A stretch of 64,000 nt of DNA. Source: Haliotis rubra (taxonomy: Eukaryota). The position numbers and the translations under genes were made by a program. The stretch lies in contig NW_025767102.1 of NCBI RefSeq assembly GCF_003918875.1, positions 682,001-746,000 of the forward strand, given 5' to 3'. The notes beneath the pieces are model-generated. The model saw only the letters and a list, made by a program, of their open reading frames with translations, was not told where the DNA came from and ran no database searches. Numbering within the stretch: position 1 is the stretch's first letter; every line of letters begins with the position of its first letter. Shown one piece after another: positions 7,581 through 62,149 of this stretch.

Positions 7581-7637
7581 ATTAAACATAAATTTCGTAC
7601 TTTTTGTTACTCTGCCTGCAGCTCAAAATTGAGAGGA

Positions 7638-8738: not shown

Positions 8739-8799
8739 GCCAGGTGTGCGTTTTGAAAGACTCTTACAGATTCCTGTTTGGATATCACTGGATTTGCGT

Positions 8800-9679: not shown

Positions 9680-11620
9680 GTCTCTGTTCCAATCTGAATG
9701 GTTGAAAAAAACGTCAATACAAGGAATTTAATCTTCATTTTCACAGCATATGATTAACATTCTTTTACTCACCAAACGTATCTTTTATCCTCAATCCAAA
9801 CTTTGCAAAACTTCCCACGACGCTATCTCTTGCTCGAGGAATCGCTATTGCTTTTATGTAACGCTTCAACAACAGAATGAGTGAGTTGATTTCTTCACAT
9901 GTTATCGGGAAACTCATCGCTTTGGGTTTAAATATAAGTAACATAGAGATTAACCTACTGGCAACCTCGAATTACACATTATCGGTCCTAGGAATGATGG
10001 AATAATGTTAAAAGTCAAACACAAGTTCGCGAATAAAAATCATTAATTCCCTAGGGACAAGTCCTACGTAATTTCACGTTGCTCTCGAAGCAAGCACCAA
10101 ACGTAGGTCTATCTTTATATGACACAAGCCTACTTTTATCGGTCCACCGTGAATTGCACTTTTTATTACTAACATTCGTGAACAGACTCGCTGAGAAGAA
10201 AACACATCTACATTGTGTAACGTTAGGTCGATGATCCGCAACGCAGGTTATAAAATACCGCCATAGATTAACTGTACCAACAAACAGCGTCTAGAAGCTC
10301 TGAGGTGATATGGTTTATGAGCCATAAACATCTCAAATCGACGGCTATGTATGAACACGTTCTGGGATAGATGGTTAATTGAAAAAAATGGATATCTCCA
10401 ACAACACACCTTAAGCTTTTAGAAGGATCTACAACGTTTTACCGGGAAGTGGACAATCCCCTGTTGAAAGTAACTGAGTAGTATATACAATTATGGGGAC
10501 ATGGGTTCCATTTAAATCGTAATGGTTAAGGTAGGCGACTGAAAAATGTTAACTGATGCACATCTGTGCGTTTGAAAAGATCACTGAATTCCCTTTAAGG
10601 TACCAGAGAGGAGAGAAACCCTGATATGATCTGCTTTTCGTGGGTCAAATACCAGATTATGATTATTATTCTTGGTTTACCACGATAAACATGCTCTTCT
10701 CGAAGAACTGTACCACTTCGGGCTTTCCGACCACATTTGTCAGACCCACAATTTCATCTCGTCAAGTGTAATGGAATTCCATACAAACAGATAAATACCT
10801 TTTGAAAGAAACATTAAATGCTGAAGACATTCCCAGTCCTCTTTTCCACTGGATTTCCGAGAATGCGTACAAAGACTTAGAGGCATTGCTTAGAGAGTCC
10901 AGCAAATTTAATTCTTAATACAATTAGTAAAGGTTTTTCATCTTTATTCACAGATTGTATTTGAGACAAGTGGAATTAAAACCACATGCAATCCCTCAGA
11001 CGGAAAGGCTCTGCTGGACTTTTTGCTGTCTCAGAAAAGAACCAATTTCGATTTTGACAATGCATTTGATTTGGCTAACTTAAGGAAAAACTTCATGCCT
11101 TGATCAATGTGGCTTTTGTTACAAAACGTGCTAACCATTGATACTGTGCCTCGTGTTCAAAGATGAAACCAAGACGTGAATTGCTGGACTTCTTCATTGA
11201 TCAAAGTTGTGTAAAATGAGGCTGTAACAAATTTAAACGAGAATCAGACGTCTCCGTGAGCAACTGAACTATAAAGAGGAGATCAGTGAAAGTGCCTATA
11301 CATTTGTCATATTTAGACATGTGCATAAAGATTCAGTGCTACCAAACACTCTTTAAAAGACTGCCTGATATGAGGGATGACTTCCAAAGTGTTACCTTAG
11401 CAACAGGAGTCAACATTTCACAACTTCAGCTTAACACGAGTGTGCTGCCTTGAAAAGTGTCAGAAGTTCAAACGTTATTTGATTGGGATTGCAATATTAA
11501 AGTGCTTGGTAAAGGTTTCTAAAAGTTATAGACTAGACGGGTGGAGGAAATTTCAAATTTGAAAGTGATAAAAATATGTCTGATGCATTTGCCTTTTTTG
11601 AGTTGTTCCCATTTCTTCAG
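9680..11620 (+). pseudogene. heavily decayed Penelope-like retroelement ORF, copy 1
   Basis: Broken frames give VGD.KMLTD, EKLHALINVAFVTK, ELLDFFIDQ and SYLDMCIKI...LPDMRDDF...GVNISQL, in the order of the PLE RT motifs (TGDL, KMLDFLIDNI, SYLDL..LYDKRDDF..GVYISQL). Confidence 0.7.
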
Positions 11621-13374
11621 CTGAATATTTTACTTGCCTTTAGATGTGTATGTGACCGGTGTCGCTAACAGTGATCTCTAAAGACATGATGATGATTCTA
11701 TTCCATTCTATTCTCATGAATGGTGCAGCAACTCTGGTTTTGACAGAAATGTCCTGAGTCCAAGGAAAGGGTTTTGTTGCAAACGTCTTCTCCACGTTTT
11801 CTGATTTTTATCGGTTTTGTTCCAATTCGCCGAACAAAATATATGGATGCGATCCAGTTGTACGGGATTGCAGTTCTAGTACCAGTACCAGCTTCGGTCT
11901 GGCTAAAGGAATATGATATGCGGATCATGATGCGCTTATACGCAACGTAAAGTAGACATAAAACATTTTGCGTGAGACCTGTATCAAACATTCAGATCAC
12001 TAAGGGAAGCGCAAACACGAAACACATGAATACATTAGTGGTGATGTAATTTCTGGTGTGTAGCCATCTTCCAATATATCTCCGCTTCAAAACAGACACA
12101 ACTGTTTTGGTGTTGATATTACCATTCTATTCCTGCAAAGGGTAATTCTTTAGTAGTTCTCATAAAATGCACACTTCAACACGTTATATACCCATAATCG
12201 TGGCTGTTAGCAATATGCAATATGCTTTCTTCGCATTCACAAACAGCTTTTCTTTTCACATAATACACAAATACAGTTGGTATCATTATTCAAGATAACC
12301 AGTTTACATTTGCATTTATATGAAAACATTTGCATAATATCTACACTGATTGATTACATTGGCTGATTATGTAAATCAGAAACTGACGCCATTAATCACT
12401 TCTAATGACCTTGACCTCATGTGTCTCTTCTTAACTCACAAGAACTACTGTTTCCAGTCATTCAAAATATGCGGTCAGCTTATTCTTTAAGCAATTGAAA
12501 AGTGTGTTTAACATAATCAGAAATACAATTACCACAGTCAGAACATTCGAGGTATGTCATCAAGTGTATTATTTACTTATTATTATATATTATTATACAC
12601 TTAATTAGGCAGTTAGGCAATATGTTGAAATATTGCTGACTAGTGTAACACAACATTCAAACCCATGGTAGGCGGGGATGGTATTGTGAATATATTCTGT
12701 CCTCGATATTCCATGGGTAAAACTCACTAATGTGTGGTTGCAGAGCTCCAAGATTTCATTGCATACTTTCATAAACTTCATGATTATAATTATACTCGTT
12801 TTTCTTTGATCTTTATCACGGTGTCGAGTTTCTCACTGAAAGATTATTTCAAATCTGAACATCGGAGTCAGTTGTCTCACATTCCTCATCACCCCTGGGA
12901 TTGCCAGCCACTGATTGGATGCGTCCTTACACCAGTGATGGCATTTAGAAAGCTTGTGTGTGGTCGTGCAACCATCTAGACTAACGCTTGAAATCAATAA
13001 TAGAATCACACCAATATACTGATGCTTTTCGAAGAGGCACGGTAATTTCTTTGTTCATTAATGAAACAAAAATAAGTGTTTCCAATCGAGCGCAAGTTCT
13101 TTAAAGGCATGGTGGTGCTTCATCAATCGTCGGAGTAGTTTGCCATAGCAATCTTGGTTCTTTTCGTCACTGTTTTCATCATTTCATTCCATGCGTGTGA
13201 TAATTTATAATGCTGTGTTTTACAGGCGTTTAGATGACAGTGTAGTTATGCATGTGAAGTCATCCCCTAAAATACATGTTGCACAACAGTCACATCACTA
13301 CATGATACAACGTGGTGACAGTGACATCATGTTCATCTTTGTAAGTTCAGTAAAGTTTGACGCTATATCAACAT

Positions 13375-13900
13375 ATACATAACACAAAATGCCTGTCTGT
13401 GACACTATGTGAACATTCCATTTTACACAAGGTGCTTGTCTGACGCTGTATGACCACATCCTTTACACAGGGTTTTTTGTTTGTGACGCTATACGAACAC
13501 ATACTTGACACAAGGTGCTTGTCTTTGACGCTATACGAACAAAATTACTTTACACAAGGTGCTTGTCTGACGCTGTATGACCACATACTTTACACAAGGT
13601 GTTTGTCTGTGACGCTATACGAACACATACCTTACACAAGGTGATTGTCTGACGCTGTATGACCACATACTTTACACAAGGTGTTTGTCTGTGACGCTAT
13701 ACGAACAAAAATATTTTACACAAAGTGCTTGTCTGACGCTGTATGACCACATACTTTACACAAGGTGCTTGTCTGTGACGCTATACGAACACATACTTTA
13801 CACAAGGTGCTTGTCTGTGACGCTATACGAACACATACTTTACACAAGGTGCTTGTCTGTGACGCTATACGAACACATACCTTACACAAGGTGCTTGTTA
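13375..13900 (+). repeat. 40/42-bp minisatellite, ~12-13 units
   Basis: GTGACGCTATACGAACACATACTTTACACAAGGTGCTTGTCT units; orthologous to the large array at 43860. Confidence 0.95.
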
Positions 13901-15159
13901 TATTACCTGAATATTACCCGTGTCTGTGAAGTTGTATGAAGATAAAACTGGGGTTTTGTATTCTTAAAATAGACGTACACAAGACAGTACACGGTGATTC
14001 CATATGAAAACTCTGAATGCACAATGACAGACATGGTACGTGTGAAATCATAGGCAGCTTTAAAGGATCAATACACGTATCTAGATAATTTTCAAAAGGG
14101 TTCTTTCTTTCTTTTTAACCATTGGATTAACAACTTATGTGCGAGAAATCAGTTTGCAGCCAATTTGATGAACAGCTTTAACAACAGCTGTTTTACTCAA
14201 TTTAACAACTCATTCAATCTAGTGAGTAAACTCACTATTACACTATCTCCTATCATAACTGTCATGTGTTAATTGTATAACGTCAGTCTTGTCACAACTG
14301 ACTTCGCATATGTCAATGTAATTATATTTGGCAGGGGCAAGACATATCCCTTGTACGTTGTCCGTGTATAACAAGACGATGCATTTTTGTCATGATAACT
14401 CACAGTATCTAAATGCCTGTACAACTCCTTTAAAACAAGAGTAATTGTCATTTACCGGTGGTCGTCAAGGTGACCACCACACGTGTCTTTATCCAACGAC
14501 TGGATGCTATCAACTAATTCATTTATACATTCAGTGACATTTAGGTGAGAGGTAAATAGATTACTTAACCAGTGAGTCGTCATGTGCCATAGTTTCTTTA
14601 AGACAGCGCGTCAGTTTCTCATTAGAGAAAAAACAACTTTCAGTGACTTTAAGAAAATTGACGGGATTTGTGTCAATTCAGACAAACTTTGTGCGTCCCT
14701 TGTTACTAACACCTCTGTGTTACAAATATTTGTGGGGAAAAAACATTGTGCAATTTTAAAAGTTGTCGTCGAGATGATTCCCTTTTTAGCACCTATCATA
14801 TATACAGCGACGACGATCGTTATGAACGTCATAAACACGTCCCAGGCTTACAAAGTGTTTTAGGTTTAGCTGAAAAAGTCTTGTTTAATCTCGTGTATGC
14901 AGTATTCACTGCAGAGACGATTAATGTCAAAAGCATTCAGTGGAACATCGTTAAGTGTGTTTCCAAATTCAAAACCTATACAGTGTCTGTGCCATTTGTA
15001 CTGATTGGTTCTTGAAAACGCAAGAAAAATGTGCTGGGATTTGGACAGCCGTCAATGCTGATTCATCTTCAGACACGACAGCCTGTATACTTCTCGTTAT
15101 TGGTATTCATGTTAGATCTCGACAGCTTCAGTTTTGGTCGTAGACAGGTTTCATTTTTT

Positions 15160-15352
15160 GCTTTGTTTGATAATTGTTTAACGCCGCATTCGGTGGTCTG
15201 TAAATAATCGAGTCTGGACCAGACAATCCAGTGGCCAGCATCATGAGCATTGATCTACGTAATCATCGTGATCTACGATGTCATGAGTCAACCAAGTCTC
15301 TTACCACAAGCATATGTTGCTGAAGACCAATTCTAACCCGGATCTTCACTGG
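15160..15352 (-). mobile_element. headless SINE family A with internal deletion (shared with 32225-32418, absent from copy 3)
   Basis: Family A sequence with the same deletion in copies 1 and 2. Confidence 0.8.
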
Positions 15353-17975
15353 TTTTGTAGACATGAGTATGGGTAAGACTCGCGTCCTGTATTTTTAGAA
15401 CAGGGAACTGTGTTTAGCATGTAAATCTTATGACGAGGTCGATCATGTCGCATAGCAAATACGTTTTAGTTATTCAGTTGAAAATAATGCTCTCATACTA
15501 ACATATAGGATCATTTCTTCACATTTTGGTGCAACTAGATCCATCAAATCAAATTTAAAAGTTGGAAATGAAAGTGACGCCCACCACACTTACCACTGCG
15601 ACACACAGTAGCTGCCATCACTGTTACAAAATGAGAGACAAACGATTGAAATAACGAAACATGTCGGTATTAGAAATAATTAATGCTGCCAAATTATTGA
15701 AATGAAACCGTTATATTGTATACACTATATGACATTGTATCCAGAAACTGTCTGTGTCGACACGTTTGGGATGCCACTCAATACCATGGACTGACTGACT
15801 GAGTTTGGTTTTACGCCGCTTTTAGCAATAGTCCAGCAACATCACGGCGGCAATACCATGGAAGGTGGAACGTTTTTTAATTAAAACGACTGCCAACATC
15901 TTTTATTTGTCATAACGTCCTTGGCCTTATTCCTGTCCTTATCCTCTTTGGACATTCATACAAAAATAGCCTGGACAAGTACAGGATAGGGATATTGTTG
16001 AATCATTATATTTATGAAACGGATGATCTGAAAAAAATCGGCTTCGGATACTTTCTCAGGCTAAATGATTTTTAAAAATACAGCTAAAAGTATGTTTTAA
16101 GAAGTTTCCACACGCTCTAAACAACGTGATGGTGCTTAATCGTACAATTGGACTGCCATTCACATCACCGACTTCAAATCTCTGACAGCACCAGTTACCA
16201 GCACTCGACCCAGTCAGCAGGGGCAGGTTGACTCAATCCTTTGAGACGTTGCATGTGATACAAGTGTCATCCAATCGATGAAACTGACACGGAGGACTGT
16301 CATACTGACGTTGCGATGACAATCAGAGGTGCTTTCTACATGTGCTGGCGAAGCATGGTGGAAAATCCGTCTAATAATGACATTACCTGTATTGTGTATA
16401 TGTATAGATTGATGGATGGAACTAGTGAGTGAAACAAACAGGGGAAGAACAATATAAGTACTAGACTACCTAGGAACTCATTCTTGGTCATTGTCATATG
16501 ATCATAGTGGTTTTCAACTTATTATTATAAACAAATTCAAAGATTTGCCATTCATCAGTTCCCTGCTGATGGTACAATCGTGCAACGAATCCGTAAGAAT
16601 AACCATTTGTGGACCGTGTCTGATTCCAGGTAAGATTTGTGTGTTTGTTTGGGTTTGTAACGCAGCACTCATTAATATTCCATTTATGTGACAGTGGTCT
16701 GTAAATAGTGGACAAGACAGTCCATTGATTAACATCATGAACATCGATCGACGCAATTGGGGAACGATGAAGTGCATCAACCAAATCAGCGAGTCTGACT
16801 GCCCGACCCCGTTAGTAGCCTTTTATGACAAGCATGGGTTGCTAAGAGCCAATTGTAACATGGATCTTCACGGTTTCCAGATAACGGTAATGTAGTGTTG
16901 TAAATGGCCTTGATCTCATATGTTTGTTGATATTCGCGAAAAATGCAGGAAAACATATATGTTACATGTTACCAATTACCGATAACAAATTGCCAGGCAA
17001 AAGAAGGTTTTTATAAAACAATTAAAAACGCTATCAAAACATTACCTGGTTCACAACTCCAAACTTAATCTCCAAAGCAAAACTAGATAACCGTAACAAA
17101 CATATACAACGCTGTCGAATGCTTATTTTTTGTTTTATCTAATTTTAGACCCATTAAAAACATGTGTATAATTTATTTTATCCGGCAGTTTACCTGGTCC
17201 CCAGTTTGCCTTGACAGACAAGAGTAGTTTGATTTTTGCAAAAGTTTAGTGAACTGAACAATCCATTCTATGGAAGGCAACAGGCCCGTTTTGCTTTAGC
17301 AGAGTTCATGGGCATTGCATACGGCGACGGGTGAAATACATTGTTTGTGTTTGTAAATTATGATAAATGCTGGACAACAGAAACAGACAACTAGTTATAG
17401 CAAATGAGTGAGTGAGTGAGTTATTATTTAACGTCACATCGGCAATATTTCAGCCATATCGTGACGAGAACATTTGACATTGTAGTGGAATATGTATATA
17501 TTATAAAACCTGTCATCGAAGGACAGTAAAACAACTAGAATATCACACTTGGATTTAAAACTAGTGTGTAAGGTTAAAACTAATAGCACTATTAGGACAA
17601 TACAAGATAAAAACAGGCTATAGATCGCCAACAACTGAAGGTCGATCACCATACTAGGGACCATGGGGACTTACAGTACCTTGGCTACCTGCATGGACCC
17701 TAGTTGGATTTACACCATCCGTTCAGCTGCTGGCGATTGCAAGAAATGTTAGCTACAATTAAAATGACAAAAATGCTACGTTTAAAAATCCTGGTAAGTT
17801 TAAATTGACTTTCGAAGTTTTTGGACTTACGTACCCCCTCAGGGGGACAATATTTTTACGATTCTTCAACCCCCCTTGAGAGTACAGCCACTAACAATCT
17901 AAGTTACTAATCAAACTACCAATTATTAAAACACAGCTATTTACAGAACATATTAATCAAAATTCATTAATGAAA

Positions 17976-20900
17976 TCAATTTCTTTTAAAAAAACCAAGA
18001 ATTAAATGAAGATGAACAGAATTAAAAAGATCCTTAACAGTTTTAACATTGAAATATTTATCCCTTATGATGGAGAATTCAACACAGTCAAGCAGGAGAT
18101 GCTTGACCGTGACTCTCTCATCACAAGGGATACAAAACGGAGGATCTTCACTATTTAACAAATATTTGTGAGTGTACCTTGTATGGCCAATACGACATCG
18201 TCGCATGATGACCTCTTCAAATCTGGACTGACAACCCAAGTAAGTGTAACCGATATAGGGTTTTATTGCATGTAATTTATTAATACCTACTTGGGTGTCC
18301 CACTTCTTCTGCATCAGATCACGGATGTAGGTTCTAATGCAAGCTTTGTAATCAGAGTAAGGAAGAAGAAGTGGTGTCACAGATTTATTTAGTGCTGCCT
18401 TGGCAGCAAGATCGGCCATTGTATTCCCAGAAATGCCAACGTGGCTGGGTAACCAACAGAAGACGATGTCGCATTGGCCTGTAGCAAGATCATTATATAA
18501 TTCGATTATTTCAATTAAAAGTGGATGTTTGCAAGAGAGATTTTTAATAGCCTGAAGGCAAGAAAGAGAGTCTGAAAATATTATATACTGGTTATGTTTT
18601 GGATGTCTTTGAATATATTTAAGAGCTGTTAAGATGGCGTTTGCTTCTGCTGTAAATATAGAGCTGTTATCAGGTAGTCTAGAAGATATTGTTCTGGCTC
18701 CAATGACAGTGGCACATGCCACTGCGCCACCGTCCTTGGACCCATCTGTAAATAAGGATTTGTATGTGTTATATTTGATTTTTAATTGATTATATTCTTG
18801 TTTATACTGTAATTCATTAGTTCCAGATTTCTTAAATTTTGTCAGAGTTAGGTCAACTTCAGGCCTAACCAATTGCCAAGGAGGAGAAGAAAGAAGACGG
18901 GAAGGAGCTATATTCTCCAGCTCAATGCCGGCAGCAGTAATAAATGGCTTCATTCTGAGCCCCAAGGGCGGAACAAGAGAAGATTTATTGTTGTACAAAT
19001 CCTCATAAAGAGGATTAAAGATACAATGAAATGCAGGATTCGATTCGTTAGAATATAGTTTTGTAAGATATTGTAAAGATAATTTTATACGTCGATGGGC
19101 AAGAGAAGGCTCATCTGCTTCGACGTAGAGACTGTCAACTGGAGAAGTTCTAAAAGATCCAAGACAAAGTCTCAGACCTTGGTGGTGGACAGAATCAAGT
19201 AGTTTTAGATTGCTTTTGCAGGCTCCACCATATACGATGGAGCCATAATCAAGTTTCGAGCGGACCAATGAGCGATATAGGTGGAGGAGGGTAGCTTGAT
19301 CCCCTCCCCACTTTGTGTTGGAAACAACTTTCAACAAGTCAAGTGCCTTCAGGCATTTAGTTTTAAGGGATTTAATATGTGGCAGAAACGTTAAGTGCGA
19401 GTCAAAAATAATACCCAAGAACTTGGCCTCCTTCACAACTTTAATGGGAGTGCCATTTAGAGAGAGTTCAGGGTCTTTATGCGGTTTGTATTTACGGCAG
19501 AAATGTATACAATTAGTTTTGGATTTTGAAAATTTAAAGCCGTTTTCAAGACACCATTTATTTATCTTGTTTAAACACAACTGCAGTTGCCGTTCAATAG
19601 TATGCATTTTCTTACCGCGACATGAAATATTAAAATCATCCACAAAAAGTGATCCATCAATTGAATCGTTTAAAACCTTGGATAAACTGTTGATCTTTAC
19701 GCTAAATAAAGTGACAGACAAAATACTGCCTTGTGGGACACCCTGATCCTGATTGTAATGGTCAGACAAGGTTGAACCCACTCGGACTTGAAAGTGCCTG
19801 TCTTTTAAAAAATTGTGAGACAAAATGAGGCAAACGACCTCTTAAACCGAAATCATGCAAATCTTTCAAAATGCCATGCTTCCAAGTAGTATCATACGCT
19901 TTCTCCAGATCGAAGAAAATTGATACTACGTGTTGTTTATTTACAATTGCATTTTTTACATAGGATTCTAATCGTACCAAATGGTCGATAGTACTTCGGT
20001 TTTTCCGGAAACCACATTGAATATTAGTAATGAGATTATTGGTTTCCAAATACCACACTAAACGATTATTTACCATTCGTTCCATAGTTTTGCAAACACA
20101 GCTAGTCAAGGATATAGGTCGATAATTAGATGCATCTGAATGGTCTTTGCCAGGCTTAGGTATAGGAACAACAATAGCATTTCGCCAAGAAGGAGGGAAT
20201 TTCCCTGAAGTCCAAATTTCATCAAAAATGTCTAAAAGCACTTCAAGACATGATGCAGGCAAATGTTTCAGGAGCTGATAGTGAATATTATCAGCCCCTG
20301 TTGCTGTATCATGAGCCTGCCCAAGGGCAGCTTGTAGCTCATGTAGTGAAAATACTTCGTTGTAATCTTCTCCGTTTTCGGAGTGGAAATTAATGTTTTT
20401 CTTTCCTCAGTTTTCTGATATTTCTGAAATTCGGGAAGATAGTTTGATGAAGCCGAGTGTTGAGCTAATGTTTCGCCAAGTTTGTTTGCAATGTCGGAAG
20501 CATCTTCAAGAAAGTGATCTCCTTCCTTAATATGTTTAACACTCGGTTTAGAACCTTTGCCTTTGATCCTTTGGGACCATATTCCACACCTTTGATATAG
20601 GTGTGTGGAATTAATCTTGGAGACGTAGGTTCTCCATGATTGACGTTTATTTTGTTTGAAGGTACGGCGAGCTTTAGCTCTGGTTACCTTAACGTTATTC
20701 AAATTATGTACAGTTGGATGCTTGCGGAAATATTTTTCCGCTTTTTTCCTATTTTCCTAGCCTGTTTGCAGTCGCCATCAAACCATGGCTTACGAATGTG
20801 TGGATTTGCAGAGGACTTAGGAATGGAATCGGTAGCTATAGCATTCAGTTCATCTGAAAACAACTGAATGGGGTCAGCAATATTCTGGAACTTTGTATGT

Positions 20901-21646
20901 TTCAATTTCTCAGTACATAACGAACTGAATTGAGACCAGTTAGCCTTTGAAAAATTCCACCTTGATGAGGGTGGAACGTCAGACGGGTTATTTACTGTTA
21001 GAAATGTAGGAAAGTGGTCACTGCCACATAAATCATCATGAACTGACCACGAAAATTCATGTAGAAGGGTCGCATCAGTGAGTGTAAGGTCCAAGGCAGA
21101 ATAGCTACCCGTTGCAGGGTGTAAATATGTATGAGTACCATCATTAAAAATACAAAGACTATTGTCAGAAATGAAATCCTCCAATACTTTGCCCTTGGTA
21201 TTAATACCATTACCTCCCCATAAAGGATTATGTCCATTCAAATCCCCCATGAGTATGCAGGGCTGAGGGAGCTGGTCATATAGAGATTGAAGTTCAGATT
21301 TCTGGAGGTTTGAAGATGGAGGGATATATAAAGAGCATACAGTAAATGCAATGTGTAAAGTTAGTCGGACTGCAACAGCCTGAAGATTCGTAGTAAGTTG
21401 AACAGGGCTGTGTATTATGCCCTGCCTCACTAAGATAGAGGAGCCTCCATTGGCTTTGCCACCCGGGGGTGAAAAGGAATGATGAGAATTGTATTGACGT
21501 AAGTCAAATGTATCTGTCTGTTTAAGGTATGTTTCTTGGAGACAGAAAATTGATGGCTGAAAATCTTGTACTAATAATTGTAGTTCATTTAAATTGGCTC
21601 TAAGTCCTCTGCAGTTCCACTGGATAAGTGTATTACCCTGACTCAT
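17976..21646 (-). CDS. LINE ORF2: AP endonuclease, reverse transcriptase, RNase H, C-terminal CCHC; split by a few frameshifts
   Basis: QWNCRG, CLQET, GDLNGH, SDHFP (APE); YRPISLTS, FFDLEKAYD, QGVPQGSILS, FVDD (RT); FTDGSK, AEANAI, FSDSLS, WLPSHVGISGNTMAD (RNase H); CIPC..KHLLLDC. Frame changes between ~20720 and ~19800. Confidence 0.93.
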
Positions 21647-21647
21647 G

Positions 21648-22841
21648 TTATATTAGGTGGTAGTACAGGGATCTGGACCGTGGCGAATGACTATTGTGAC
21701 GCACACGGTGGTGTGGAGTGACATCCATGTCCTCCAGAAGTTGATATTTGTTAAATATTTGTACCGGATCCCGTTGACCTTTCGGTACTCGATCCGATTT
21801 TTGGGAATAGTTGACTGACTTGCTGGCATTTACTATTACAGGTGACGGTGAACGAGATTGTTTACGCGATGGTGATTTTGTTTGCGTAGATGCAACATTT
21901 TTCGTTTGACGTATTGAATATTTCGCAGTCTTCACCCAGGTGATATCGGTCTGGCACTCTACAGATTTAACAGTCTTAGTAGGCTGACGGGTAACTACTG
22001 CAGAGTATGATACAGATGCAGTTGGAGTGTTAGCAGATGTTACCAAACGTTTAGCCTCTGCAAAAGAGATACTCTTTTCATGCTTCAGTTTAACAATTTG
22101 ATGTTGTAGTTGCCAGACTGGGCAGGATTTTGATGAAGCAGCGTGGTCCCCAGAACAATTAGCACATTTAGGGCTGTTTGGGCAGTCTAAAGTGTCATGC
22201 GCAGGTTCTCCACAACGGTGACATTTCTTGCTATTGGTACATGATTGGGCACCATGACCAAACTTTTGACATGAGTAACACCGAAGTGGATTTGGTATGT
22301 ACTTGTCTACACCAATATTACAGTAACCTGCTTTGATGGATGGTGGTGGAACTGGAACAGAAAAGGTAAACAGATAAGTATTCAACTTAATAGTTTGACC
22401 ATTCTGCCTGCTTGTAAAACGTTTCACAAACGTTACACCCTGGTCGTTCAGTTCAGAAGCTATCTCATCCTCAGACATGTCTGCTAGACAACGGTCTCTA
22501 TCTCTGACAATGCCCTTGGAACTGTTGAGAGTTTTGTGTGGTGACACAGTAACTGGTACGGAAACAAGATGTTTGACAGCCAATAGTGTAGCTGATTGAA
22601 AGGCTGATTTACATTCTAGTAAGATACAGCCAGATCGCATCCTTTTCATTGACACAACATCACCAGCGATACCATAAATCGCTTTTGATAGAGCAAACGG
22701 ATTCAATTTCAATGGACCATCATCCGGAGAAGAAATCACCAAAAATCGAGACCAATGGTCAGATTTGTTTTTTGAGACGGTGTCATCATCAGAAGATGTA
22801 CTATCTTCTAAAGTACGTTTGAGTTGTTTTGGAGGTATCAT
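21648..22841 (-). CDS. LINE ORF1, gag-like nucleic-acid-binding protein
   Basis: YIPNPLRCYSCQKFGH..CHRCGEPAH..CANCSGDHAASSKSCP (three CCHC knuckles); stop is 1 nt before the ORF2 ATG. Confidence 0.93.
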   Translation of the reverse strand: MIPPKQLKRTLEDSTSSDDDTVSKNKSDHWSRFLVISSPDDGPLKLNPFALSKAIYGIAGDVVSMKRMRSGCILLECKSAFQSATLLAVKHLVSVPVTVSPHKTLNSSKGIVRDRDRCLADMSEDEIASELNDQGVTFVKRFTSRQNGQTIKLNTYLFTFSVPVPPPSIKAGYCNIGVDKYIPNPLRCYSCQKFGHGAQSCTNSKKCHRCGEPAHDTLDCPNSPKCANCSGDHAASSKSCPVWQLQHQIVKLKHEKSISFAEAKRLVTSANTPTASVSYSAVVTRQPTKTVKSVECQTDITWVKTAKYSIRQTKNVASTQTKSPSRKQSRSPSPVIVNASKSVNYSQKSDRVPKGQRDPVQIFNKYQLLEDMDVTPHHRVRHNSHSPRSRSLYYHLI

Positions 22842-23294
22842 GGTAAGTTAATAAAGGTTCATCATCCCAGCTCCCCACCCACCACGGAGTATCAGGAAGA
22901 CAATGCCATATGCCAGTGGGTGTCCAACTAGCAGCACCAAGGATACTGGGATGATATACTCCAGCAGAAGTATCAATTCAAGATCAATAAATCCACCAGA
23001 TTGACCCATGAGCCATCGCCTTCTGGGCATTAAGACTCTAGGTAATTACATTTTGATCTATGTAGAATCAATAAAAACATTGTAGGTCTATAAGTGATTT
23101 GACCAAGACCCCATGGCAAGCACTAGAAAATATCAATATTGTGCAAAAAACAAGTAACATGCACAGGGCTCGGCATGACCAGCCGATTGGTAGAACCGGG
23201 CCCATTCTACCACCCGTCTAGGTGAAGTAAGGGTCGAAGTGGTGTATTGGGCAAAGGAACACTGTTCCTGGAGCCCTTGCCCTCAACCACCAGA

Positions 23295-23375
23295 ATCCCG
23301 TCCTCCACCGACACAGGGGCGCAACCCACGGCAAACGGGTTGGTGGACCTAATATCCCCCCGGGTCCACAACGGG
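23295..23375 (-). promoter_or_regulatory. structured 5' UTR motif of the LINE, shared with the 5' end of SINE family A
   Basis: CCCGU-U-GUGGACC-CGGGGGGAUAUUA-GGUCCAC-CAACCC-GUUUGCCGU...ACGGGAU versus SINE CCCGU-GAAGAUC-CGGGUUAGAAUU-G(G/A)UCUUC-AGUAACCC-AUGCUUGUCGU...ACGGGAU. Confidence 0.6.
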
Positions 23376-23378
23376 GGT

Positions 23379-23437
23379 TGAAGGGCGCTTAGCGTGACCC
23401 AGCACCCACCACGAGGAGGTGGCCCTTCATGGGTGCC
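23379..23437 (-). ncRNA. HDV-like self-cleaving ribozyme (minimal, essentially no P4) at the LINE 5' terminus
   Basis: GGCACCC A UGAAGGGC C ACC UCCUCGU GGU GGGUGCU GG GUCACG CUAA G C GCCCUUCA. P1 is 7 bp with a G1.U wobble, P2 is 8 bp, P3 is ACC/GGU, L3 is UCCUCGU with P1.1 CC/GG, J4/2 is CUAA (candidate catalytic C at 23392). G1 abuts the TSD. Confidence 0.85.
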
Positions 23438-24941
23438 TATAGCAAATGAAACAGTTCCAAGTCCCATATTGTCATATACAACGGCGGATATGAATCGTGG
23501 ACACCAATGGTAAACTACCTAACAAGTAAACATAGCTTTCCTGTAGATGAATCATGCGATATTGCAAAACTAAGCAAGAGTTGATCAATGTGTTGGACTG
23601 ATGCACAAAAGGTATATTGGTCGAATTCCCCATTTCAACATGTAACATGTTAGTGTATTTGTTCACTTTAACCAATGAGTTGTTTTAGCGTGAGTTTGTG
23701 TCGGATGCCAACGGCTGGGCAGGATACGCACATCTTGTGTTACTCACTATTTGAAAGTAATTCAGAAACGCATGCTAATGATAAGGTCGGCCCTGCTTTT
23801 GATGGGGCTTTCTCGTAGTCATAGAAAGGGTATTATTTACATCTTTCAAAAATCTTATTGTATGCAATCTTAATAGGGTGGATATTTCAGTAAAAATACG
23901 TTATATTTGATTTTGCTAGATACCCTTCCCGTGTGAAAGCTAGGTTATTTTTATTGCAACTAATGCTGACTTTCTGGCTGCAAAGGATAATGTGATTATT
24001 TGATTATAGCAAGGCACCATGGTGTGTGCATTGTTAAAGGAGTTGTACACGCAGACCAAACAAAATTTCATCAGGTAATTTGAAACGACTATTTTTATCG
24101 TCTACTAATTCAAGTTCCACTGTCTACTTTTCTTTTGTAATGATCACTTACCCTAATTACCCACAGACAATGTTACAGGTTTACACAAAGCTCTAATGAA
24201 GAGGACTGGACCAAGATGTCTACTTCAGGAAATTCAGTTAATGCACTTAAACCATTTTAGAACGTTGGCATCAGGGGATTACGGAAAAATATTTCAAGGT
24301 TATTTTGAGATATTCTTCACTGTCATTGCTGTCAGCGTGTCTATGGTTAGAGCATACACTCGTGTAGCTAAGTTGAAACAGCTTAGATTAGCAGACTCTG
24401 GTTGAATGCCACAAATACGCAGATGTCAGTGTGTGAAGTCTGCAACTGCACACGTAGGCAATCTGACCACACAACGGCAATGAATAATCAATATTGTATA
24501 TTCAAACCCACAGTTTCATGATTATCATTTCAAACATGCAATACAATTGCTACTCTAAATTGCATTCATAAATACTGTTTAATGTGACCAAAGAGTCATC
24601 TCTACGTTCTTTAATCAACTATCGTTCTGAGGGTATCTCAAATTGGCAGGTAAAGAAGAAACAGATCTGTCAAAACCACCTCGAATCCTGTCGCCCTTAT
24701 ACCAGAATATAGGTGCGGCTAGCCTTCTAGAACTGCACATGTAGCCGGGATATAGTAGATTGTGGTTCTGCCCAGAGAGCTGAATGTGCGTGGTTCGATC
24801 CCTGACTGTGTTACGTCAAACGAAAATATTGTACTTGTTGTTGCCCTGCCCGCCACTCAAAATTGAGAGAAGAAATCCTGGACCAGTAAGCATTTATTTC
24901 TCTGTTTGTTTATTTATTTTATTTATTAGCATTTAAACATA

Positions 24942-26444
24942 CTCTCCAAAAAAAGAAACGCATCATAAAAATAGCAATTTGATGTAGCAATGAATTAAAA
25001 CGTGAATCATTTTACAAGAGGTTATGCTCTGTTTTTGAGTCCTATGGTGTTTATGTTTTGAAACATCACAACAAAACGCACCATCCGTTAAATACCCGTA
25101 TTTAACAGCATGATTTTCATTTTCGGCGTGTGGTGTCACAGAATACACAATTCACATGCAATGCACGTGAAAGTTGGGGATCAGATAGTCTCAATGATGG
25201 GTATAAAAGGTTGATCGCTGTCTGTCGATTATTCACTGTATTTGGAATATTGTTGACGAACGCTAAATGCCACGTCTAAGTGAAGCCAACCGTTATATCG
25301 CCATTGGTTTGCTTGAAGCTGGCCAGTCTCAACGTGCAGTTGCCCGACGCATGAATGTTCACCAAAGCACCATTTCACGGCTCTGGGAGAGATATCGCCG
25401 GCAGAATGCGGTCGTAGTAGGCGACCTCGAGCGACCACTGCGGCGCAGGATCGCTACATCCGGGTACATCACCTGCGCATCGAACAGCTACGGCGACCAG
25501 TACCGCTCGACAAATACCCGGATTGAGGAGGCTTTCTGCACAGACCGTCAGGAACAGGTTGAGAGAGGCTGGTTTACGTGCTAGAAGACCTTATTTTGGC
25601 CCTGTGCTTCGACAACAACATCGTCGACATCGAGTTCAATGGTGCACCAACGTTCAGGCCTGGAACCTACCGAATTGGCGTAGAATCTGGTTCATTGATG
25701 AATCACGATTTCTATTGGAACGACGCAATGGAGGAATGCGGGTGTACAGACGTCGACGTGAACGTTTCGCCGACGCTTGCGTTCCCCAGGTGGACAGATG
25801 CGGCCGGGGCAGTGTTATGATGTGGGGAGCGATCACCTGCCGTAGGAGAAGTTATTTGGTGTTGATCCAGGGCAACCTCAACGGTACTGTGACGAAATCC
25901 TACGCCCACACCTCCTTCCAATCATTGATCGCCAGAGGGAGTTGTTTCAACAGGAAACTGCCAGGCCCCACACAGCACGTCACACTAGAGACTTCCTTCA
26001 GAACCACAACATCAATGTGCTCCCCTGGCCCTCAAGATCACCGGACTTAAACCCGATCGAACATCTGTGGGATGCCCTAGACAGACGGGTGCGACGCCGT
26101 AACCCTCAGCCCCAGACACTTCAGCAACTCGCACAGGTACTACAGGCAGAGTAGGCTGCGATTGGGCAACACGAGATTCTGAGACTTATTCGTTCGATGC
26201 CGAGGCGATGCCGTGCAGTTCTGGATGCCCACGGTGGTCACACGAGATATTGACTTCAGCGCACCACACGTCTCCATGTGACACTCAAACTGACTTTCCT
26301 CGAGTTGGTGCCAAAGACGGATAAGTCTGCAATCCCAGTGTTCAATTTCGATATATTTCATTGACTCATAAAGCCTACAAGATGTTTCAAAATAAACATA
26401 AAAATACAGTTGAAATTCCTATATGCGTTTCTTTTTTGGGAGAG
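24942..26444 (+). mobile_element. Tc1/mariner (DD34E) DNA transposon, complete with TIRs
   Basis: TIRs CTCTCCAAAAAAAGAAACGCAT / ATGCGTTTCTTTTTTGGGAGAG flanked by TA; the empty site is in copy 3 near 36220. Confidence 0.92.
25267..26253 (+). pseudogene. Tc1-type transposase with frameshifts and a premature stop
   Basis: HTH (SQRAVARRMNVHQSTISRL), SAQTVRNRLREAGLRARRP, FIDESRF, SVMMWGAI, FQQETARPH (second Asp changed to Glu), SPDLNPIEHLW; TAG at 26152. Confidence 0.9.
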
Positions 26445-27869
26445 TATAATTTGATATCTTGCTGCCACTTACAAATGATGCAAAATTATTCACACTAAAA
26501 CAACTTACATATTGATCATTTCAATCCCCCATCCACAATCATACCCATAACTTAACTACTAGCCGACAACACGTCCATAAAGGAAGGACTGGTTTGAAGT
26601 CCTGCAAAATATCATTTCCCAACTGTGAGATACATGGGGTTTTGCTACCAAAGAAAATAAAAGTATATATTTACACACTCCAGATCCGCAACCAAGTATA
26701 ACATGTAACGGCTTTATTGAACATAGAGAACAGATTCCCGGAGCGGCAAAGGTTACGACAGCAATATAGTGTACATACTTGGCAATGTAAATCACAGCCC
26801 TGTGAACTTTCCTTTTTTATTAACCAATATATTGGCTCCTATTTCAAGTGTTTTCAGGATCTACTCGTGTGATCATCTTTGAGTGAAATTGTCCATGGCT
26901 GTTCCATTAAGCGTCCATCACAACATAATGAGTCGACACGAAATAACAGACTGGGTCACCGTAACTTTGTCCAGATGAGTCTCGATCCCAACGCCATGGA
27001 GACGATTTGATATTCCATTTGATATACATCTCCCGAAGGTTTGAAGACATGATGAGTTGAAAGGAAATTATGTATCAGTTGTAAATGGACGTTTTACAGA
27101 ATAGTTTTTAGCGATACATGAAGTGGTTTTGGCAACTTTCTGGGAAACGAGGTTGATAATATGATGCTGGACTAGGGAGACTGATGAAGGATAGTGTAGA
27201 GGCTATTGATTGCTTTAGCTAGATTGTCTATGATACCGCTATTTATTGAACGGTATTTCAGACTATTTGGGTTTTAATGATGACGGAGGTGTTTTTTTCA
27301 ATATAAATGGTAAAAGTGTTGTGGCTGAGGTGGGTTGGTGTTTTAGTTTTAATGATGATAGATATGATATATATATATATATATAATATATATTATATGT
27401 GTGTGTTGTGGTGGGTGGGGTGTGGGTGTGTGGGTGTGGGTGTTAAATGTGTTCTGGTTGGATGGCATGATGAGTTTTAACGCTGCTACGATTGACGTAT
27501 TGGGATAACAGCAACGGGGTGAAATAAAAAAAATGACGATTTCTTGCAAAACTCATGATCGAAACTTACAACCAACATGTGCAATCTGACTGCCATTGGG
27601 GAGCAGTGCTTATCGTTTATGTGTCGTATTGGAAGATAGCAGCTAACGCTTTGGTCAGTCCGGATACGTGCAGAAACAACTAATATTCGTGACTGGGAGG
27701 ACCAACCCTGAACGTATATGTCTGTTGAGTGAACACCGAAACGAATGAGTGAGGATGAGTGTTCTATGTAAGTACACACGGTAACAGGGATGCTTAACTT
27801 CGGGATGTTATATATATACTTTTGTCATTATGATAAAATATGAGAGTGGGTGTTTATACATTGTAAAAT

Positions 27870-29860
27870 CGACAGGTGTCTCTGTTGCAACTTGAATAGT
27901 TCTCAAAACGTCAATCAAAGGAATTCAGTCTTCATTTTCACTGCGTATGAATAACATCCTTTAATGCTCAAATGGTATCTTTTATGCTCAATCCAATATT
28001 TACAAAATGTCCGATTACAATTCACCCCATCACCTAATCGTAGCGTTACTATCAGTTTATGTAACGTTTCAACAATAAATTGAGTCCCCTGATGTGTCCA
28101 CATGTGATCGCAAAACTCATTACTTTGGGTGCAAATATAAGTAACATATGGAATAACCGACTGGCAACCTCGAATTACCCATTATCTGTCCCTCGTGGAA
28201 TAATCTTAAACGTCAAGCCCAAGTTCGCGAATGACAAAAGTCTATTCCCTGAGGACAATTCCTACCTCATTCCACGATGCTCTCGAAACAAACGCCAAAC
28301 GTGGGTCTATCTTTATATGACACAACCCTACTTTTATCGGTCCATCGTGAATAGCACTTTTTATTACTAACATTCGAGAACAGACTTGCTGGGAAGAAAA
28401 CACATCTATATTGTGTAATGTCAGATCGATGATCCACAAAGAAGGTACTAAAATACCGCCATAGATTAACTGAACCAAGAAGCAGCGTCTCGAAGCTCTT
28501 CGGTGATATGGTTTATGAGCTATAGATATTTCAATCGCTAAGTATGAACACGTTCTGGGATATACGGTTAATTGAAAAATACCTTTATCATCTTTTTCTA
28601 TCTAAAGTAAGATCTCTCCAACACACCCTTATGCTTTTAGAAGGATCTACAACTCAGACGTTTTACCAGGAAGTAGACAATCCCGTGTTGAAAGTGACTG
28701 AGTAGTATATAATTATGGGGACGTGGACACCATTTAAATCGTAATGGTTAAGGTAGGCGACTGATAAATACTTACTGGTGCAAAAGATCATTAAATCCAC
28801 TAAATCCTCTTACCGCCCATGTTCAGCAGACCTTCACATATCATGGGATTATGTACAAACAAATAAATACCTTTTAAAATGAAACTGTAATTGCTGAATA
28901 TATTCCCAGTTCTCTTTTCAATTTTGGATTAGAGACAATCCGTACAAGGAAAGTCTTAGAGATATAGCTTAGAGATTCCAACAAATTTAATCCTTAATAC
29001 AATCAGGAAAGGCCTTTCATTTTTATTCACTGTTTGAGGCAAGTGGAATGTAAAGCACGTGGAATTTCTCAGACTCAAAGGATCTGCTCGACATTTTGCG
29101 GTCTAAGAAAAGTACCAATCATTTTTTTGACAAAGCATTTGATTTGGCTAACCAAAGGAAAAACTTCATTCCTTGATCAATGTGGCTTTTGTTACAAAAC
29201 GTGCTGACCATTGATATTATGCCTCGTGTTCAAAGATGAAAGGAAATATTGACTTAGAAACCAATGCGTGAAATGCTTGACTTCTTCACTGATAAAATCG
29301 GTGTAAAATGGAGCTATAAGACATTTAATCGAGAATCAGACATCTCCATGAGCAACTGAACAATGAGTGTAGGAGATCACTGAAACTGTCTCTATCTTTT
29401 TCAGAGTGAGACATAAAGACTCGGTGCGACCAAACACTCTGTATGACATGAGGGATGATTTCCAGAGTGTCAGCTCAGCAACTGGAGTCAACATTTCACA
29501 ACTTCAGAATTACACCCATGTTAGCAGTCATGTGAAACAGTACCACATTTTATTCCCCATGACGTCACATAACTTGTAACGTCATGTATTCTTGCGCTGT
29601 TCACTTCGCCTGTTTGAGTGAACTATGCAAGATAAACCTTACTGTTATCAACAAAACTACTTCTAATTTTATTCATAGTTATGTTCTGCTTCACTGTGAC
29701 AGATATTTGAGCAAAGCTCTTTCCAAAAGCATCAAAAGTTCAAACGTTTTGATTGGGGTTGTAATATAAATGTTTTAGACTAGACGTTAAAGAATAGTTC
29801 AAATTTGAAAGTGATTAAAATATGTCTTATGCAGTTACATCCTTTGAACTGTACCATATG
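27870..29860 (+). pseudogene. decayed Penelope-like ORF, copy 2
   Basis: Paralog of 9680-11620; KEKLHSLINVAFVTK, MREMLDFFTDKIGVKWSYKTF, LYDMRDDF..GVNISQL. Confidence 0.7.
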
Positions 29861-30044
29861 TTCCCATTCTTCAGTTGAACATTTGCCTTTGCATGTGTAT
29901 GTGACCGGTGCCACAAGCACTGATCTATAAACAAAGAGTTTTGTTGCAAACGTCTTCTCCACGTTTTGTAATTTATAGGGTTTTTTGCCAATTCGCAGAT
30001 CAAAATATGGATGCGATACAGGACTGCAGTCCTAGTACTTGCAC

Positions 30045-30500
30045 CAGCTTTGGTCTATCAGCTGTAAGAGTGATGGTTTTCTTGGATTCCAAAAGATTTC
30101 ACTTGGTTCACTAACTCGTCAATGGCCAACATTATGCTGATCAGCTGAGGATACTTTGTGAGAACATCAAGGCAAAACGTCGGAGGAAACTTAGTGTCTC
30201 TTATTTCACCTCGACATTGCACCTCTGCGTATCTTTTCTTTGGTTTCAATGCTTTCCTGATGTTTTGAATTCATGAGACATCATTCACATTCGTCAGGCG
30301 ATTTACGTCTTTTGCCAATTGTGAAGTCAGAACGGCCTGGCAATAAGGCAAATGGTGATGACTTCATTTCTGCAGTGGACGACACTTTAGACCACCATGA
30401 TCAAACCTTCTACACAAGCAGATTCAAAGCAATCCATCCCTGTTGGTAGAATTGTGTGGTTTCAAAGATAATTATTTGGAAAAACTACTTTTCAACTTAC
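30045..30500 (+). pseudogene. decayed mariner (DD34D-type) transposase C-terminus (paralog at 42630-43010)
   Basis: SAVRVMVFLDSK, VNGQHYADQLRILCENIKAKRR, LFHLDIAP and DFISAVDDTLDHHDQTFYTSRFKAIHPCW resemble mariner SAGKVMASVFWD..INGQYYA..FHQDNAP..AVEDFF..FYTTGIQALQHRW. Confidence 0.75.
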
Positions 30501-31231
30501 TTCGTCAACAAAACTATCCTAGACACCCCTTATACTTCATAACAACCACTCAGTTGCATATTATACACTTAATTACTCCCAGGAAGTTGTGGTGATGCTG
30601 AAATATTGATCACTAGCGCAACAGGACATCCACCGACCCTATGGTTTGCGTGGATGATTTTATGGACATACTCAGCCCTGGACATCCCAGGGGTAAAGCT
30701 GAGTAATGTATGTTCCAGAACTCCAAGATTTCGTTACAGACTTTCATAAACTTCATGATTATAATTATACTCGTATAATTCACATTTGAACAGTGGAGTC
30801 AGTTGTCCCACATTCATCATCACCCTGAGACTGCGAGCCATTGATTAGATTATCCTTCCACCTGTGATGCCATTTCGAAAGGTTGTGTCTGGTCGTTCAA
30901 CCATGTAGAGTAACGTTTGAAATCAATAATAGAATTATGCCAATAAATGGATGCTTTTCGAAGTCGGACGTTAATTTCTTTGTACACACATGTACATTAA
31001 AGAAACAAGAATAAAGTGTTTCCGATCAAGCGCAAATTGAAATATTTTCAAACGCATGGTTGTGCTTCCTCAATCGTCTGTGCAGTTTGTAAAAGTAATC
31101 TTGGTTCTTGTCGTCACTCTTTTCATCATTTCATTCTATGTGTATTATAATTTACAATTCTATGTTTTACGCGCGTCTAGATATGATGGTGTAGTAACAT
31201 GATGTTTTGACCTGTATCAGCATCCCTTGAG

Positions 31232-31470
31232 GTAAGTGAGTGAGTGAGTTAGGTTTTACGCCCCACTCAGCAATATTCCAACCTTTTGCAGGTGATCTGT
31301 AAATAATCGAATCTGGACCAGACAATCTAGCGATCAGCAGCAGGAGCATCGATCTACGCAATTGGGATACGATGACATGTGTTAACCAAGTCAGCGAACA
31401 TGACCACCTGATCCCGTTAGTCGCCCAAGCATTGGTTACTGAAGAGCAATTCTAACCAGGACCTTAGCGA
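31232..31470 (-). mobile_element. headless SINE family A at the site where copy 2 lacks the minisatellite
   Basis: (GAGT)n tail plus family A body. Confidence 0.85.
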
Positions 31471-32769
31471 ATGATTACTCCCAACTTCGAAGTACCTGGA
31501 AACACTCCTATAGAAGTACCGGAGGTTGTCAAGGTGACCGTCACATGTGTCTCTATCCAACTACTGGATACATTCAGCTAATCCATTTATACAGGCAGTG
31601 TCATGTAGGTGAGAGTTAAATAGATTGCTTACCCAGTGAGTCGTCATGTTCCATAGTTTCTTTAAGACAATGTTAACCTTGCTTGTGTCAATTCAAACCC
31701 TTTTTCGTCTCTTGGAACTAAGGCTTCTTTTTTTAAATATTTTGGAAAAAAACATTGTGTGATTTTAAAAGTTTTAGCCCAAACCATCTATACAGCGAAG
31801 ACGATCGTTATAAACGTCATGAACACGTCCCAGGCTTACAAAGTGTTTTAGTTTTAGCTGAAAAAGTGTTGTTCAATCTCGTGTATGCAGTATTCCTGCA
31901 GAGACGATTAATGTCAAAAGCATTCATTGAAACATCGTTAAGTGTTTCCAACTTAAAAACCTATACAGTGTCTGTGCCATTTGTACTGATTGTTTCTTGA
32001 AAACGCGAAAACATATGATGGGATTTGGACAGCCGTCAATGCTGATTCATCAAATTAAAAACCTATAGTGTTTGTACTGACTGGTTCGTGAAAACGCGAG
32101 AGAGAAAATATTATGGGATTTGGACAGCTGGTTCATCTTCAGACACGACAGCCTGTATTCTTCTCGTTATTTGTTTTTTTGTAGATCTCGACAGCTTCAG
32201 TTTTGGTCGTAGACATGTTTTATTTTTTGCTTTGTTTTGGTAAGTGTTTAACGCCGCATTCGGTGGTCTGTAAATAATCAAGTCTGGACCAGACAATCCA
32301 GTGGTCAGCATCATAAGCATCGATCTACGTAATCGGGATACGATGTCATGTGTCAACCAAGTCTCTTACCACAAGCATATGTTGCTGAAGACCAATTCTA
32401 ACCCGGATCTTTCCGGGTTTCGTAGACATGAGTATGGGTTGAATAACAGAACAGAGTATGAGTTGAATAACTGTTTCAGAACAAGGAACTGCATTTAACA
32501 TGTAAACCATATCGCATAGCAAATACGTTTGAGTTATTCAGTTGCAAATAATGCTCTCATACTAACATAATGGATCATTTCTTCACATTCTAGAGCAAGT
32601 AGATCATTCATGCACCACATTTACCACTGAGACACACATCATCATCACAATTTAACTCCACTCTTACAAAATGAGACACTACACTAATTGTAACTCCCTC
32701 ACCGTAACTTGTTATTTCGACTTTTTACTCATCGATTCTATTATTTCTTCATTTCAATTATTAAGTACC

Positions 32770-37200: not shown

Positions 37201-37439
37201 ATTGAAATATTGGGATTACAGCAACCAGGTGAAATGAAACAAATGACGATTTCTTGCAAAACTCATTATCGAAACAAAAAAACTAACATTTGCAATATGG
37301 CTGTAATAGTGCTTATCGTTTATGTGTCCTCGTGTTGTACGATGGCAGCTAACGTTTGGTCAGTCCAGATACGTGCAGAAACAACTAACGTTCGTGACTG
37401 GGAAGACCAACCCTGTACGTGTATGTCTGTTTGGAGTGA

Positions 37440-62100: not shown

Positions 62101-62149
62101 AATTTGCAACAAACCAACCAAACCAAGTAACCAACTCTCCTGAACATGG

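Follow-up and report, generated by a model that had tools for sequence, protein, structure and literature searches.

HDV-like ribozymes at the 5' ends of LINEs (R2, R1, R4, RTE, LOA, and Ingi) are already known, as are P4-less forms in phages. In Trypanosoma cruzi, the first 77 nt of L1Tc/NARTc, of the Ingi clade, are the HDV-like ribozyme L1TcRz (PMC3185411), for which Mg2+-dependent cleavage at +1, leaving a 5'-OH, has been demonstrated experimentally. Elements of the Ingi clade are described as having no ORF1 and as carrying a 2A-like peptide near the N terminus of ORF2 (PMC3708506). The relevant passage of PMC5786205, citing Eickbush and Eickbush 2010 and Ruminski et al. 2011, also names R2, R1, R4, RTE, and LOA (Baggins) as having 5' HDV-like ribozymes; an I/Nimb-type element is absent from the list in that passage. 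The known minimal, P4-less HDV-like ribozymes comprise drz-Mtgn-1 to drz-Mtgn-4 and the theta ribozymes of gut Caudoviricetes, and about 99% of P4-less ribozymes are confined to Caudoviricetes phages, with many processing tRNA 3' trailers (PMC10879173). Finally, an 'LP' head of ~68 to 70 bp is common to Nimb-17_LMi, I-3_DR, RTE-9_CPB, and the LP-SINEs of Littorina, Haliotis, and oysters; Matetovici et al. 2016 interpreted this head as a promoter and pointed out the analogy with the L1Tc promoter/ribozyme (PMC4758252).

Here, we describe the 59-nt head of a LINE from the abalone Haliotis rubra. Judging from its sequence, this head is probably a P4-less HDV-like self-cleaving ribozyme that would trim the element RNA to its exact 5' end. 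A P4-less HDV-like form in a eukaryotic LINE, and in a clade not listed before, looks new: in the literature that we searched, no paper brought 'HDV-like' together with either 'Nimb' or the I-type LINEs of molluscs.

A 59-nt HDV-like fold at the head of an abalone LINE

The LINE lies on the minus strand of the window, by which we mean the whole stretch of 64,000 nucleotides that was analyzed. It occupies ~6.03 kb between two target site duplication (TSD) copies, from 23437 to ~17405, and its features are as follows (ribozyme nt 1 is position 23437).

23438 to 23449, minus strand: 5' copy of the TSD, TCATTTGCTATA, directly upstream of G1; the identical 12-mer is at 17396-17407
23379 to 23437, minus strand: putative minimal HDV-like ribozyme, 59 nt, predicted cleavage 5' of the G at 23437
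23431 to 23437, minus strand: P1 5' strand GGCACCC, nt 1-7, partner at 23401-23407
23422 to 23429, minus strand: P2 5' strand UGAAGGGC, nt 9-16, partner at 23379-23386
23408 to 23420, minus strand: P3 ACC/GGU around L3 UCCUCGU, nt 18-30, with C22 and C23 going to P1.1
23399 to 23407, minus strand: P1 3' strand GGGUGCU (nt 31-37), then GG, the 3' side of P1.1 (nt 38-39)
23393 to 23398, minus strand: P4 remnant or linker GUCACG, nt 40-45 (GUAACG or GUAGCG in other copies)
23387 to 23392, minus strand: J4/2 CUAAGC, with the candidate catalytic C at 23392, aligned to RF02682 GCUAAG and RF00094 GCuAA
23379 to 23386, minus strand: P2 3' strand GCCCUUCA, nt 52-59
22842 to 23378, minus strand: remainder of the 5' UTR, 537 nt, conserved in part across the Haliotis, Gigantopelta, and ENA families
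21648 to 22841, minus strand: ORF1, 397 aa, three CCHC zinc knuckles
17976 to 21646, minus strand: ORF2 in four reading-frame pieces, with APE, RT, RNase H, and a C-terminal CCHC
17405 to 17975, minus strand: 3' UTR with a (CTCA)4 tail at 17405-17420
17396 to 17407, minus strand: 3' copy of the TSD, TCATTTGCTATA, its first 3 nt within the tail

Read on the minus strand from 23437, the head is GGCACCC A UGAAGGGC C ACC UCCUCGU GGU GGGUGCU GG GUCACG CUAAGC GCCCUUCA. This order of segments matches the canonical P1/P2/P3/P1.1 arrangement of the HDV nested double pseudoknot, as the initial annotation had proposed, and our reading of the sequence agrees with it on most elements: a P1 of 7 bp that includes the G1·U37 wobble, a P2 of 8 bp, a P3 of 3 bp, and a P1.1 in which L3 pairs with the two bases after P1 (C22-G39 and C23-G38). 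Two details had to be changed. L3, given initially as the 6-nt UCCUCG, is 7 nt long, and J4/2, given as CUAA, is 6 nt long and includes the additional unpaired G50 and C51. The first six letters of L3 are those of genomic HDV. The candidate C75-equivalent catalytic C is C46, as first proposed, and together with A48 and A49 it forms the C-N-A-A of the HDV family at the start of J4/2. Looking for a P4 helix between P1.1 and J4/2, we found none, only the 6 nt already recognized as the cut-down P4. A P1 that lengthens at the cost of P1.1 is known to be inhibitory; here, an A precedes G1 and a G follows U37, which makes such an extension impossible. The fold had also been called one of the smallest natural HDV-like folds, and at 59 nt it is indeed small, but drz-Mtgn-1, at 51 nt, is smaller.

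At gathering thresholds, Rfam gave no match anywhere in the window. In a permissive search of 301 nt, the head matched RF02682 at model positions 1 to 74 (25.4 bits, E 0.007; gathering score 44) and RF00094 at model positions 1 to 89 (21.9 bits; gathering score 50). Both matches run end to end with P4 deleted and place model position 1, and thus the cleavage site, at 23437. The related ribozymes described below score 27.5 to 34.3 bits on the Rfam HDV models, meaning that the Rfam thresholds miss these RNAs. Because earlier, relaxed versions of our motif descriptor returned mostly noise, we rejected them and used instead a strict descriptor (full P1, GC-rich P3, L3 starting with UC, 2-bp P1.1, C-N-R-A, and P2 of at least 6 bp) together with shuffled sequences. 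The strict descriptor matched once in the window, compared to a mean of 0.024 matches per dinucleotide shuffle (n = 42). In the window and ~400 kb of related loci taken together, it gave 20 matches, all sense-oriented and all upstream of ORF1 homologues, with no matches elsewhere or on the opposite strand. A covariance model built from the related ENA-assembly family only (P2, P3, and P4, without P1) had its best match in the window at 23435-23378 (18.4 bits, filters off). Conversely, a covariance model of the minimal type was too specific and did not find the other ribozyme types. The nested minimum free energy (MFE) fold was unremarkable (z = -0.87); MFE folding is uninformative here because the fold is a pseudoknot.

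Pfam searches matched ORF2 to Exo_endo_phos, RVT_1, and RNase_H and found no match for ORF1; the C-terminal motif of ORF2 is CX2CX8HX4C. The description of a two-ORF, RNase H-bearing LINE thus stands, with a separate ORF1 and an APE/RT/RNase H ORF2. The element was also described as full-length, which is correct for its ends and incorrect for its coding capacity: relative to the intact ORF2 of a related copy, ORF2 passes through frames -2, -1, -3, and -1, with changes near 20750, 20400, and 19810. Given these three frame changes, the copy is coding-dead, and its ribozyme sequence is intact. We place the element in the I superfamily as an I/Nimb-like LINE, an assignment made by domain content rather than by an RT tree. 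Unlike Ingi-clade elements, it has a CCHC ORF1, and it leaves no room for a 2A peptide (in ORF2, the APE domain begins as early as residue 8), so we favor I/Nimb over the Ingi/L1Tc clade. Homologues of ORF1 abound in Haliotis asinina, H. rubra, H. rufescens, and H. cracherodii, and Gigantopelta aegis has them as well.

The surroundings of the LINE are repetitive. A multi-kilobase repeat unit is present in three copies (~6470-15264, 16881-32334, which is interrupted by the LINE, and ~35944-47692) with 66 to 97% identity in pieces, and a 42-bp tandem repeat (about 70 registered copies) forms arrays at 13333-13966 and 43769-~46000, 30 kb from each other. The LINE sits in a further segment of ~680 nt (17337-17407 plus 23450-24055) that is missing from repeat unit 1, and a search for an empty site in the paralogous repeat unit found none for the window's own insertion. 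When we searched the ORFs near the LINE for a host gene, we found only a Tc1-type transposase remnant: two adjacent ORFs at 25267-26050 on the plus strand match HTH_38 and HTH_Tnp_Tc3_2, as in a degraded Tc1/mariner-type transposase. In addition, the 3' end of the LINE (17406-17459, minus strand), including (CTCA)n, is 80 to 82% identical to SINE-like ends at 62149-62202, 53743-53792, and 31235-31283; common LINE/SINE 3' ends are the usual sign of tail partnership.

Shared 5' ends and covariation among related copies

We fetched loci that encode ORF1 homologues in public assemblies and found the same 58- to 59-nt ribozyme ~600 to 690 nt upstream of ORF1 in other Haliotis loci. Besides the window, copies of the minimal type are present in H. 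rubra (L002), H. rufescens (two copies in L004), H. cracherodii (L090), and H. asinina (L091 and L092), and they score 75 to 92 bits with a covariance model built from four of them. Together with two copies that carry a 16-nt P4, the seven minimal-type copies make up nine Haliotis copies with full 5' ends, from H. rubra, H. rufescens, H. cracherodii, and H. asinina. All nine begin at nt 1: their upstream flanks are unrelated, homology runs from nt 1 onward, and no copy reaching upstream of G1 was found among them. In the related ENA-assembly family, homology likewise starts at ribozyme nt 1 in four of five copies; the fifth, L008, differs at nt 2 and 3. The Haliotis loci without a ribozyme (n = 2, L001 and L094) are 5'-truncated: their homology to the 5' UTR begins either about 195 nt into it or just 94 nt ahead of ORF1.

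In the window, G1 adjoins the TSD, as was claimed initially; the claimed length of 12 bp holds in part, since the first TCA of TCATTTGCTATA overlaps the last (CTCA)4 unit and the duplication is therefore 9 to 12 bp. A second boundary comes from a LINE within a LINE: the H. rufescens copy L004b is inserted at the start of ORF2 of L004a (L004 214-7299), for which L090 (2318-4417), 96.7% identical and from another species' assembly, is an uninterrupted paralogue. The junction reads ...ctcctccagg|AGATAA in L090 and ...ctcctccagg|GGCACTC in L004, and therefore G1 is the first inserted base of L004b.

The pairing of P1, P2, P3, and P1.1 is conserved in the other copies, with compensatory changes. 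When the seven minimal copies are aligned without gaps, 98% of cells are paired and four pairs are changed on both sides; in slid controls, in which the 3' partners were moved by 1 to 3 columns, 36 to 48% of cells are paired and there are no double changes. The P1 pair C6-G32 is U-A in the H. rufescens and H. cracherodii copies, and three P2 pairs are changed on both sides among the Haliotis copies, for which the P2 strands are UGAAGGGC/GCCCUUCA in the window, UGAAGAGC/GCUCUUCG in the other H. rubra copy, and UGGCGAGC/GCUCGCCG in H. asinina. By comparison, C46, A48, A49, U21, G26, and G1·U37 are invariant among the seven minimal copies. Because full-length MAFFT alignments misaligned the minimal and P4-bearing types, we used ungapped sub-alignments across types as well. 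Over nt 1 to 39 of 10 copies representing three ribozyme types, 98.1% of cells are paired (37 to 55% in slid controls) and 6 of 12 pairs are double-changed. The second P1.1 pair varies by family between C-G, A-U, and U-A, which is especially telling because it is P1.1 pairing that sets the delta fold apart. What we observe, then, is the fold, the statistics that support it, its covarying conservation, and its coincidence with insertion boundaries.

Relatives with P4 and apparent exchange of 5' modules

Related families carry the same fold with a P4. A second H. asinina family (L093 and L095), which scores 34.3 bits on RF02682, has P1 CCCCCAC/GUGGGGG, L3 UCUUCGU followed by AG, a 16-nt P4, J4/2 CGAA, and a P2 of UGGUGUCA... 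paired with AUGACACC. In Gigantopelta aegis (L003) and five ENA copies (L005 to L009), P1 is CCCCUGC/GCAGGGG, L3 is UCACCGU followed by UG, and P4 is a 7-bp hairpin of 20 to 21 nt; the P2 strands are UGUGCUGUA/UACAGCACA in the former and UGUGUGGG/CCCACACA in the latter. More distant ORF1 relatives on seven metagenomic contigs have an HDV-like motif with a P4 of 34 to 89 nt, located 255 to 837 nt upstream of ORF1. These correspond to strict-descriptor matches in 7 of 80 metagenomic loci with ORF1 homologues, 42 of which have at least 600 nt of upstream sequence. Four metagenomic loci (L068 at ~1770-1900, L081 at ~10-140, L072 at ~170-290, and L077 at ~100-240) have a CCUCCACG(N)GG core upstream of their ORF1 homologues. 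These cores are possibly more divergent HDV-like variants, with a P1 that the strict descriptor leaves unresolved.

In the ORF1 tree, which has a midpoint root only, a single Haliotis clade (99/99) contains the five minimal lineages together with the one that has a 16-nt P4, and the families with a 20-nt or longer P4 lie outside it. P4 was probably lost within the abalone lineage, which is the economical reading because all outgroups carry P4. Since close relatives still have P4, the loss in abalones looks independent of the phage forms. If so, animal P4-less delta ribozymes arose independently of phage theta ribozymes, and abalone LINEs keep a natural series of P4 shortening (~80, 20, 16, and 6 nt). 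Graded P4 lengths in sister families provide a natural experiment on the dispensable parts of the HDV fold.

The 5' end and the coding region give different groupings. Over the ribozyme and the first ~330 nt of the 5' UTR, L090 groups with L004 and L091 with L002, whereas in ORF1, L090 groups with L091 and L004b with L002. This conflict suggests that 5' modules have been exchanged between LINE subfamilies. Separately, a stretch of ~170 to 180 nt of 5' UTR downstream of the ribozyme, including GGGATYCTGGTGGTTGAG, is 69 to 89% conserved between the window (23161-23342), L003 (2591-2760), and L005 (2584-2757), and it may have a function of its own, as a second 5' UTR element. Two SINE-like repeats in the window (50687-50745 and 51359-51410) have heads that are 75 to 79% identical to nt 60 to 123 of the H. 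rufescens/H. cracherodii LINE 5' UTR; because this is the sequence right after the ribozyme, the SINE heads seem to derive from post-ribozyme 5' UTR.

Proposed function and comparison with known ribozymes

We propose that the LINE would be transcribed from upstream, within a longer transcript of the host or of a neighboring transposable element, and that the head of the element RNA would adopt the nested double-pseudoknot fold. On the model of R2, RTE, and L1Tc, C46 may then act as general acid/base, with Mg2+, in a co-transcriptional cut immediately 5' of G23437. The cut would give the LINE RNA a defined 5'-OH end and make it begin with the first nucleotide of the element. Cleavage at G1 would mean that all full-length daughter copies have the ribozyme and share one starting base. 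Catalysis, the source of the transcript, release from read-through RNA, and any extra role in promotion or translation are what we infer here.

Three other explanations of the head have to be weighed against cleavage. That a GC-rich LINE 5' end matches a permissive motif by chance would fit Rfam scores under gathering and an unremarkable MFE z-score, but this explanation is effectively refuted by the shuffles, which predict only 0.024 strict-descriptor matches per window, by the position of the match exactly at the TSD boundary, by a fold that covaries across species and LINE families, and by the uniform setting of the strict matches, 20 of 20 being sense-oriented and upstream of ORF1. The head could instead be mainly a promoter or start module at the DNA level, with the common 5' end marking initiation and the fold being secondary or inactive. 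The conserved ~70-bp LINE/SINE head was read in this way by Matetovici et al. 2016, and initiation and cleavage are indistinguishable from a common 5' end alone. We nevertheless consider a mainly promoter-based role quite improbable: P1, P2, and P1.1 keep their pairing even though P1 and P2 have changed entirely in primary sequence, and such compensatory double changes indicate selection on RNA pairing rather than on a DNA motif. Furthermore, the invariant residues are those known for catalysis. The homologous L1Tc region is both promoter and ribozyme, which makes a dual role plausible.

It is also unlikely, in our assessment, that the abalone structure descends from an HDV-like ancestor, no longer cleaves efficiently without P4, and is kept for translation initiation or for recognition or protection of the 5' end. 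P4 adds stability in HDV-like ribozymes and here amounts to 6 nt, and HDV-like ribozymes are reportedly linked to translation initiation, going by the title of Ruminski et al. 2011. On the other hand, copies from four species retain all catalytic-core positions without variation, self-cleavage in vitro is known for natural HDV-like ribozymes that lack P4, and the 5' ends of independent insertions still lie exactly at the cleavage site. A self-cleaving ribozyme is therefore the reading that we prefer, with some points against it. The Rfam scores are far below gathering, and the MFE fold is not supportive. Downstream 5' UTR sequence could inhibit folding of the ribozyme, as reported for L1Tc. 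With strict matches in only 7 of the 80 metagenomic loci, the trait may be less than universal in the wider LINE group. P4 is essentially absent, and the P4-less activity documented for phage and metagenomic minimal ribozymes concerns other sequences.

If the head is a ribozyme, one more LINE lineage joins those that bear them, and the 59-mer, being so short, lends itself directly to kinetic, structural, and aptazyme studies. The LP head resembles it by description, as a conserved module of 60 to 70 nt at the extreme 5' end of Nimb-type LINEs that is present in Haliotis, and differs in having been read as a promoter rather than as a ribozyme. We tentatively suggest, as a real possibility short of a probable one, that the ~70-bp LP head of locust and zebrafish Nimb LINEs, turtle RTE, and the LP-SINEs of Haliotis, Littorina, and oysters is in fact the abalone ribozyme. 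The 'LINE-promoter' heads of mollusc SINEs have been puzzling, and this view of them can be tested. If it is true, an entire class of SINEs begins with a self-cleaving HDV-like ribozyme rather than with a Pol III promoter, and the ribozyme is a portable 5' module swapped between LINE and SINE families.

Like L1Tc, the abalone element is a non-site-specific LINE with APE and RNase H that has its ribozyme, with a cut (here predicted) 5' of +1, at nt +1. P3 is 3 bp long in both, and the L1Tc ribozyme presumably has a similar CGUGGUG core. The resemblance to L1Tc that had been suspected for the GCUAAGCGCC block is real: the block is common to L1Tc nt 61-70, as rebuilt from the primers printed in PMC3185411, and it forms the J4/2-P2 junction in both the abalone ribozyme and the experimentally active L1Tc ribozyme. 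The two differ in that L1Tc has a real P4 and 77 nt, whereas the abalone ribozyme is P4-less with 59 nt; P1.1 is 1 bp in L1Tc and 2 bp in abalone, and promoter activity has been demonstrated for L1Tc only. With R2, R1, R4, RTE, and LOA, the abalone element shares a 5'-terminal HDV-like ribozyme on a non-LTR retrotransposon that releases the element RNA from a co-transcript, a release that we infer for abalone. In contrast to the abalone form, the ribozymes of those elements have a P4, which is often large, and R2, R1, and R4 are specific for rDNA. With drz-Mtgn and theta ribozymes, it shares the succession of P1, P2, P3, L3, P1.1, a ~6-nt linker in place of P4, and then CUAA, as well as the size class (51 nt for drz-Mtgn-1 and 59 nt for abalone). 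Because P4 is dispensable in this known minimal subfamily, the abalone RNA is a minimal variant rather than one excluded from the HDV-like class. We rejected membership in the theta ribozymes themselves, which belong to Caudoviricetes genomes, typically 3' of a tRNA, in contrast to the eukaryotic LINE context found here. The abalone LINE would thus join a phage-sized P4-less delta fold and eukaryotic LINE processing in one element.
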